Shown: positions 27,751 through 28,696 of the stretch, piece by piece
Layout of the letters: every line of letters begins with the position of its first letter
How positions within the stretch are numbered: the stretch's first letter is position 1
Assembly: GCF_016433145.1 (NCBI RefSeq)
Contig: NC_058130.1
Coordinates: forward strand, 219,815,247 to 219,879,246
Direction of reading: 5' to 3'
Length of the DNA stretch: 64,000 nt
DNA from: Gracilinanus agilis
Taxonomy: Eukaryota
Made by a program: the position numbers and the translations under genes
Notes under the pieces: model-generated
Seen by the model: only the letters and a program-made list of their open reading frames with translations
Databases searched by the model: none
What the model was told of the DNA's origin: nothing

Positions 27751-28696
27751 GGACACCAGAGGTCACACCACACTTCATCTCATGCTCCTACATTGGCCAG
27801 TTACCCCTGCCACTTGGACAGAACCAGTAAACCGTATTCAGAGAATCCTGGCAGACTTACAGAATCATGCTATAATGTGTCTTCATATATTATGTGAGCA
27901 TGGAGCTCTGGTTAATGCTCGGGTAGACAACGACTACAAATATTCTCCACTCCACCTGGCCATACGCTATGGTACCTATCCAGTTCTCTCCATTCTAGCC
28001 CAGAATGGGGCTCATATGAATGCCACTGATGAATCATGCATGACACCCCTTCATATGGCTGCTGGAATACTGAACAAGGAGATGACCAAAACTCTAATTG
28101 CTTGTGGAGCCAATGTAAATCGTACTGTCTCTGCTACTGGGAATACTGCCCTTAAACTAGCAGTATGTGCTGCATCAGCTAAAGCAGGCAGGTTATTGGC
28201 AGCAGATATAAGCTGTATCCATTTACTCTTAACTAATGGAGCAAAAGTAAATGCCCAGGATCATGAAGGACAAACTGCTATTCATGAAGCATGTTTTGGA
28301 GGCAGAGAAGCAATAATTAATCTACTACTTGAATTTGAGGCAGATATTAATATCTTAACAAGAAATGGGGAAGCTCCAATTTTTATGTTTCTTCAGCGCA
28401 GATCCAATATAAGAGATACAACACTACTTGACAAGCTCCTTTCTCTCTCTTATCCTCTCAAACTGACCAACAATCAAGGAATTCTACCCACAGGACTTCT
28501 ACTACCAGAATTTCATCTATTAAAGGAAACCCTAATAAGGTTATCAAAAAAACCTTTATCCTTACAGGTGATCTGTAAAAATAACATCAGAAAGTTTTAT
28601 GGAGAAAAATATAAACAACACTTAAAACAACTTCTCCCACTGAAGATATGGGACTCTATATATAGTTACTGTGACTTATCCCAACTCTTGAAATAA
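27751..28696 (+). CDS. ANKRD61: ANKRD61 exon 3 (946 nt; ankyrin repeats plus C-terminal SOCS box-like motif); total 418 aa
   Basis: tatag|[18 protein letters not shown]...; several TPLH/GAxVN repeats; ends LSQLLK-TAA. Confidence 0.95.

Follow-up and report, generated by a model that had tools for sequence, protein, structure and literature searches.

Among the substrate receptors of Cul5, the ASB family, counted as ASB1 to ASB18, makes up the largest class (PMC3779351, PMC11263391). The motif rules against which a new candidate can be read are well described. The BC box is defined as (S,T,P)LxxxCxxxΦ (PMC3355856). A Cul5 box needs LPΦP, in which the proline at the fourth position is important for Cul5 specificity, and a Cul2 box reads ΦPxxΦxxxΦ and lies 8-23 residues past the BC box (PMC3355856, PMC4812663). 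SOCS1, which has an incomplete Cul5 box, is a poor binder of Cul5 (PMC4812663). ASB9 carries the cullin box LVLP and assembles with Cul5, and the gap between the BC box and the LP of the cullin box is 3 residues shorter in SOCS4 and VHL than in ASB9 (PMC3779351).

The ankyrin repeat protein ANKRD61 has been called completely uncharacterised and a “missing protein” (PMC10088045), and a 2026 study describes it as just a protein-interaction scaffold (PMC13279872). We found no paper in the searchable literature that ties ANKRD61 to a SOCS box, to Elongin B/C or to a cullin; annotation at the InterPro or superfamily level may already flag a SOCS domain in it. Here we analyse ANKRD61 in a marsupial, starting from a 64,000-nucleotide stretch of DNA, referred to as the window. 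The reading of ANKRD61 as an ASB-like protein is supported by homology, conservation, the predicted fold and an ASB-like placement of the C-terminal box under the ankyrin domain.

The ANKRD61 gene

A three-exon gene with GT..AG introns was assembled on the + strand of the window. It encodes 418 amino acids with no frame break and has the following parts:

19907-20122, + strand: exon 1 coding sequence, Met1 to Gln72, followed by the donor GTAACT (from assembly of open frames and splice sites)
26869-26963, + strand: exon 2, with the first clear ankyrin repeat (IPIHLAAKY...)
27751-28696, + strand: exon 3 coding sequence, with the other ankyrin repeats, the capping region and the putative C-terminal SOCS box
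28694-28696, + strand: stop codon TAA, in exon 3
28697-28848, + strand: 3′ UTR, with AATAAA at 28815-28820 and the poly(A) addition site near 28848

The exon 3 stretch is the tail of a 321-codon open frame (27731-28696), and Pfam finds clear ankyrin matches in the exon (Ank_4, E 1.3e-26; Ank_2, E 3.3e-23). NCBIfam likewise returned generic ankyrin matches for the window protein and nothing else. An initial annotation of the window had quoted 39 C-terminal residues standing after a run of ankyrin repeats, and the translation of 28553-28669 (+ strand), which ends in DSIYSY, reproduces them exactly.

A protein search with the window gene returned at least 120 clusters. Among the matches listed, all named ones were ANKRD61, and we therefore identify the window gene as the marsupial ANKRD61. 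The closest matches listed were from dunnart (96% identity) and koala (94%), and identity was 40-58% in turtles, amphibians, coelacanth, sharks and teleosts. The source names of the family all read “ankyrin repeat domain-containing protein 61”, the same name with “-like”, or “hypothetical”.

Transcript contigs were available from a sister species about 1% divergent from the window. The runs from which they come are not labelled RNA; we take them as RNA because the contigs are spliced and poly(A)-tailed. Run X1, which gave an unspliced contig alone, was left out of the evidence. Runs X4, X6 and X7 yielded contigs in which position 26963 is joined to 27751, skipping the GT..AG intron 26964-27750, and letters of exon 1 stand ahead of exon 2 in sister-species contigs (loose ends at 26866). 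One contig stops at 28848 and is followed by a poly(A) run, ~30 nt past the AATAAA at 28815. The coding differences listed for exon 3 between the window and these transcripts are all synonymous (9/9). ANKRD61 is intact and expressed, its mRNA is spliced and polyadenylated, and the gene is under purifying selection.

The N-terminus MGNITK (window 19907-19924) is conserved in amniotes and missing from sharks, coelacanth and teleosts. It is a possible candidate site for N-myristoylation at Gly2, with a motif that is less than ideal. The window also contains a run of N at 61125-61503, outside the ANKRD61 gene.

Position within an HRI (EIF2AK1) intron

The initial annotation had placed the whole ANKRD61 coding sequence on the opposite strand within an intron of EIF2AK1, the gene for HRI. 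Exon ends and splice signals agree with this placement:

29872-29972, - strand: HRI kinase exon ending ...VVHRDLK and followed by GTAAGT; 29872 is given exactly and the 5′ end approximately
18212-18325, - strand: next HRI exon, starting at 18325 after AG; the far end is approximate
18326-29871, - strand: HRI intron, delimited by the flanking exon ends, with the complete ANKRD61 coding sequence inside it in antisense orientation

The extent of the intron thus follows from the end of the one exon at 29872 and the start of the next at 18325. Within it, a long T/A homopolymer at ~23880-23940 reads as poly-Phe and poly-Lys open frames and is ordinary low complexity.

We compared this intron (window 18326-29871) with the corresponding HRI regions of a shark (L001:8003-15652) and a teleost (L002:9042-12219). 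In the shark, an ANKRD61-like gene at 10001-14311 lies between the end of the HRDLK exon at 15638 and the start of the PRNIFL exon at 8020. In the teleost, an ANKRD61-like gene at 10001-12115 lies between HRI exon ends at 12205 and 9059. In all three animals the host of ANKRD61 is one and the same HRI intron, which separates the HRDLK exon from the PRNIFL exon within the kinase catalytic loop, and the nesting therefore predates the split between cartilaginous and bony fish. The teleost gene occupies about two thirds of its 3.1-kb HRI intron. Neighbours of the nested locus include AIMP2 in the shark and a PMS2-like MutL gene in the teleost.

Such persistence could be taken to mean that the nested antisense position ties ANKRD61 to HRI, be it by transcriptional interference, by shared regulation or by an action on HRI or its pathway. 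The use of an identical intron in marsupial, shark and teleost counts in favour of this idea. However, a constant position is expected without any coupling as well, because a nested gene has few escapes from its host intron, and we regard a functional tie to HRI as quite improbable. The conserved nesting shows that the arrangement is old and is no evidence of functional coupling between ANKRD61 and HRI; a link of ANKRD61 to the integrated stress response is speculation. We give even less credence to the joint reading in which ANKRD61 would be a working nineteenth ankyrin-SOCS-box cullin-RING receptor in germ cells and would also be functionally tied to HRI. On this very improbable account, the tie would explain why the gene has stayed for more than 400 million years in an intron that interrupts the catalytic loop of HRI, the heme-regulated eIF2alpha kinase. 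It might take the form, equally far-fetched at present, of reciprocal expression by antisense transcription or of ubiquitination of HRI, or of another member of the HRI pathway, directed by ANKRD61.

The C-terminal domain

The C-terminal part of exon 3 contains the following elements, with residues numbered from the start of the exon 3 product:

28505-28549, + strand: helix before the putative SOCS box, residues 252-266, with a counterpart in the helix that stands before the SOCS box of ASB7 in the alignment
28559-28588, + strand: candidate BC box, helix H1, with Leu (28562-28564) and Cys (28574-28576) invariant in orthologues
28622-28663, + strand: candidate cullin box region, helices H2-H3, with Leu at 28634-28636, Pro at 28637-28639, no Pro at the fourth position and an aromatic residue at LP+8

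Conservation of these elements was followed in an alignment of 32 orthologues drawn from every major group of jawed vertebrates. The BC-box Leu and Cys, on which the initial annotation had staked its reading, are invariant (L271 and C275, 32/32), and so are L295 and P296 of the cullin box, from sharks and teleosts to mammals. In a larger family set the cullin-box Leu is swapped conservatively for Ile or Met solely in squamates and in one teleost. LxxxCxxxΦ followed by [LIMV]P was found in 150 of 160 proteins fetched. Nine of the ten proteins that lack this composite motif are short or partial, and the tenth is an unrelated protein made of repeats. The BC-box match that had been reported at the ANKRD61 C-terminus is present in the window, and LxxxCxxxΦ occurs in 149/150 family members. 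The strict form with S, T or P before the Leu is limited to 109/150 because in teleosts the residue at this place is Arg.

Squamate ANKRD61 proteins (P0144, P0145, P0147, P0151) are shorter, at 289-324 aa. Their cullin box reads Ile-Pro or Met-Pro where others have Leu-Pro, their tail, QEFSYASK, is distinctive, and their BC box is unaltered.

A search with the Pfam SOCS_box model (PF07525) gave a divided answer on whether the domain is recognised by a SOCS-box HMM, a check that the initial annotation had called for. For the window protein, whole or as its 64-aa C-terminus, there was no SOCS_box match at E <= 10. Among the C-terminal 64 residues of 28 ANKRD61 orthologues, by contrast, SOCS_box was the most frequent Pfam match (11/28, best E 4.4e-05), and the sawshark C-terminus, at 24.0 bits, exceeded the curated cut-off of 23.5 bits; the other matching orthologues scored 16.8-18.9 bits. 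When C-termini were scanned individually, all eight non-mammalian ones matched SOCS_box (E 4.4e-05 to 0.008) and neither of the two mammalian ones did. No precomputed SOCS_box domain was present among the 120 relatives listed. Mammalian C-termini also matched TINF2_N and DNApolII_insertion weakly (E 0.006-0.12); these matches fell far below the cut-offs of both models and were dismissed as noise.

Profiles built from the family itself point to the ASB proteins. With a profile of 28 C-termini searched against 177,635 PDB sequences, ASB9 (three constructs) and ASB7 were the sole matches below E 0.02. All four alignments keep the BC-box Leu and Cys in register. Those with ASB9 also cover the LP of the cullin box, and the one with ASB7 stops before it. 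A 36-sequence profile gave ASB7 at E 2.3e-05 (27.4 bits), with an alignment that extends over the helix preceding the SOCS box, and ASB9 at E 0.005-0.02. Neither profile matched a FEM1 or VHL box in the PDB. In a profile search of 1.84 billion proteins, there was no ASB at E <= 0.001. This search gave 38 matches. Ten of them were examined by Pfam, ten by sequence and ten by source name, and all those examined except one repetitive protein belong to the ANKRD61 family. As the family stands alone among these library-wide matches, we consider the domain a distinct, diverged branch. Language-model features also fell with SOCS_box clusters (score 0.86), which we treat as a lead and no more.

The protein P0155 gave weak profile matches in 11 stretches. 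Its 756 aa are built from roughly a dozen almost identical repeats in which LKQLQHQIATCSKIQI occurs, with no SOCS box, and it was ruled out as low-complexity repetition with no relation to ANKRD61.

An AlphaFold model of the exon 3 product (pLDDT 88.8) places helices at residues 252-266, 271-283, 288-294 and 297-304, and the predicted models contain a three-helix fold, H1-H3, like that of solved SOCS boxes. The whole model was compared with known structures by re-aligning the 1000 best chains from Foldseek, and the best 50 of the 1000 rows were inspected. In these rows ASB9 and ASB8 alone align through the C-terminal helices, as far as model residues 306-307. ASB9 superposes over 256/259 residues (model 4-306, Z 21.7) and ASB8 over model residues 63-307, up to its own last residue. 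Both structures come from Elongin B/C complexes. The remaining ankyrin proteins in the best 50 rows end by about residue 281, mostly at 262-272.

The C-terminal 64 residues were also modelled alone (pLDDT 82). In an exhaustive comparison with 48,161 chains, the top rank went to the SOCS box of SOCS1, which superposes over 40 residues at rmsd 2.1 Å (Z 4.3). ASB9 followed at rank 2, also over 40 residues, with rmsd 1.9 Å, Z 3.4 and 28% identity; SOCS4 came at rank 5 and ASB8 at rank 8. Foldseek against 350,542 chains returned ASB7, SOCS1 and pVHL as its top three, with non-significant E-values of 3.7-7.4. Judged by their absolute scores (Foldseek E 3.7-7.4; Z 3.4-4.3), the structural matches of this predicted domain in isolation are weak, and it is the ranking alone that is telling. 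In a shape search of the ESM Atlas, ANKRD61 itself was followed in rows 2-8 by SOCS-box families without exception: ASB18, a SOCS-box-only family, a WD40+SOCS family, NEURL2, ASB15, SOCS1b and SPSB4.

LxxxCxxxΦ is a short motif, and the window protein taken alone has no HMM match, so that a degenerate motif might have arisen by chance at the C-terminus of an otherwise unremarkable ankyrin protein. We find this hardly credible, as mutually independent lines converge on SOCS boxes: profile searches in both directions, the exhaustive structure search, the Atlas shape search and the superposition of the whole chain on ASB9 and ASB8. Conservation, the profile matches to ASB7 and ASB9 and the predicted structure support the proposal of the initial annotation that ANKRD61 is an ankyrin and SOCS-box protein that is not named as one. 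The ANKRD61 C-terminus is very probably a SOCS-box homologue of the ASB type.

Homology of the domain leaves room for a loss of function, in which the C-terminus is a relic SOCS box, descended with that of the ASB proteins, which now serves as a structural cap or partner-binding bundle and binds neither Elongin B/C nor a cullin. The drift of the mammalian sequences under Pfam detection fits such a history, as do the non-canonical cullin box and the lack of ANKRD61 in the searchable literature on SOCS-box and CRL5 proteins. However, the residues that are invariant family-wide (Leu, Cys, Pro) are the ones known to face Elongin C and the cullin rather than a general hydrophobic core, and selection on the gene is purifying. 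We therefore judge a relic domain to be unlikely.

A candidate ubiquitin ligase receptor and its relatives

Because a diverged SOCS box is conserved at its C-terminus from sharks to marsupials, ANKRD61 is probably, by a modest margin of confidence, an ASB-like protein that has gone unnoticed as the substrate receptor for a ubiquitin ligase of the Elongin B/C-cullin kind. Binding to Elongin B/C as such we hold to be distinctly likely. In the mechanism that we propose, the ankyrin domain would bind a substrate, and the three-helix C-terminal SOCS box would dock on Elongin C via the BC box, through the Leu and Cys of helix 1. The cullin-box Pro, together with the preceding Leu and the hydrophobic face that follows, would recruit the cullin-Rbx module. 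ANKRD61 would in this way serve as substrate receptor in an E3 ligase of the Elongin B/C-cullin-RING type, with binding, cullin choice, ligase activity and substrates all putative.

The choice of cullin is less clear. LPΦP is not the form found in the ANKRD61 family: a Pro at the fourth position is present in 1/150 members, and K, R or T stands there in 129/150. The Cul2-box consensus ΦPxxΦxxxΦ is present in 139/150, and the spacing from the BC box to the cullin box is 14-15 residues in 148/150, within the published range of 8-23. By motif rules alone, the ANKRD61 cullin box thus appears at least as Cul2-like as Cul5-like. The same counts, including the lack of the fourth Pro in 149/150, could be read to mean that a genuine Elongin B/C-binding BC box is combined with recruitment of Cul2-Rbx1, in a VHL-box-type receptor like FEM1A/B/C; FEM1B and FEM1C are indeed among the structural matches of the ankyrin domain. 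The FEM1 alignments, however, end at about residue 270, short of the C-terminal helices, and the sequence-profile matches are exclusively ASB SOCS boxes. An aromatic residue at LP+8 is a feature of Cul5 boxes and is found in 141/150 family members, which also argues against a Cul2 receptor. Moreover, ASB9 reads LVLP-ED-L-KQF-L in the alignment and so itself fits the Cul2 consensus and lacks the fourth-position Pro, yet it assembles with Cul5 (PMC3779351). We consider a VHL-box-type receptor doubtful.

Since ASB9, a partner of Cul5, shares both traits, the motif rules are not decisive for ankyrin-SOCS proteins. We favour Cul5-Rbx2 because the nearest sequence relatives of the domain are ASB SOCS boxes. 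Judged from sequence, the use of Cul5 by ANKRD61 appears to be about an even prospect, and the use of Cul2 a considerably smaller one. The initial annotation had described a variant Cul5 box in an ASB-type Cul5 receptor. The variant form, with its missing fourth Pro, and the likeness to ASB proteins stand; the assignment to Cul5 is insecure in view of the Cul2 consensus.

For an orphan protein, a conserved SOCS box provides a concrete candidate function, that of an E3 substrate receptor, which can be tested cheaply. ANKRD61 would be an added candidate among the cullin-RING receptors that are of interest to targeted protein degradation and to the biology of germ cells. The case also illustrates that Pfam-based annotation overlooks diverged mammalian SOCS boxes which can still be detected via fish and shark orthologues. 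If its Cul2-like cullin box matters, ANKRD61 would be informative on how ankyrin-SOCS proteins choose their cullin.

Among the known systems, pVHL figures with nothing more than the weak third-place Foldseek match of the domain. FEM1A/B/C, the ankyrin proteins with a VHL box for Cul2, join ankyrin repeats to a box that binds Elongin B/C, as predicted for ANKRD61. The ANKRD61 cullin box fits the Cul2 consensus (PMC3355856), and the FEM1 matches are confined to the ankyrin domain. CIS/SOCS1-7, SPSB, WSB, NEURL2 and Rab40 have the fold and the BC-box motif in common with ANKRD61. The SOCS box of SOCS1 is the top structural match of the isolated domain, and the SOCS, SPSB, WD40+SOCS and NEURL2 families were returned by the Atlas shape search of the C-terminus. 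In contrast to SOCS-box proteins in general, ANKRD61 has ankyrin repeats as its putative substrate-binding domain, and the canonical LPΦP is cut to LP.

The ASB proteins are the closest system. ANKRD61 differs from them in having neither an ASB name nor an ASB annotation, in mammalian sequences that lie under Pfam detection, and in a profile that falls short of the ASBs at library-wide significance. The family also has a signature of its own, with a YGEKYK loop and LP-x-K/R-Φ-W. In both ANKRD61 and ASB1-18, N-terminal ankyrin repeats stand directly before a C-terminal three-helix SOCS box, which in ANKRD61 is predicted. The whole predicted ANKRD61 chain superposes on ASB9 and ASB8, where other ankyrin proteins in the best 50 rows stop earlier. 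The BC boxes of ASB7 and ASB9 are in register with that of ANKRD61, ASB9 shares the LP of the cullin box and ASB7 the helix that precedes the box. The gap between the BC box and LP is 15 residues in ANKRD61 and 16 in ASB9, and it is shorter in SOCS4 and VHL; the spacing in ANKRD61 is therefore nearer to the ASB type.
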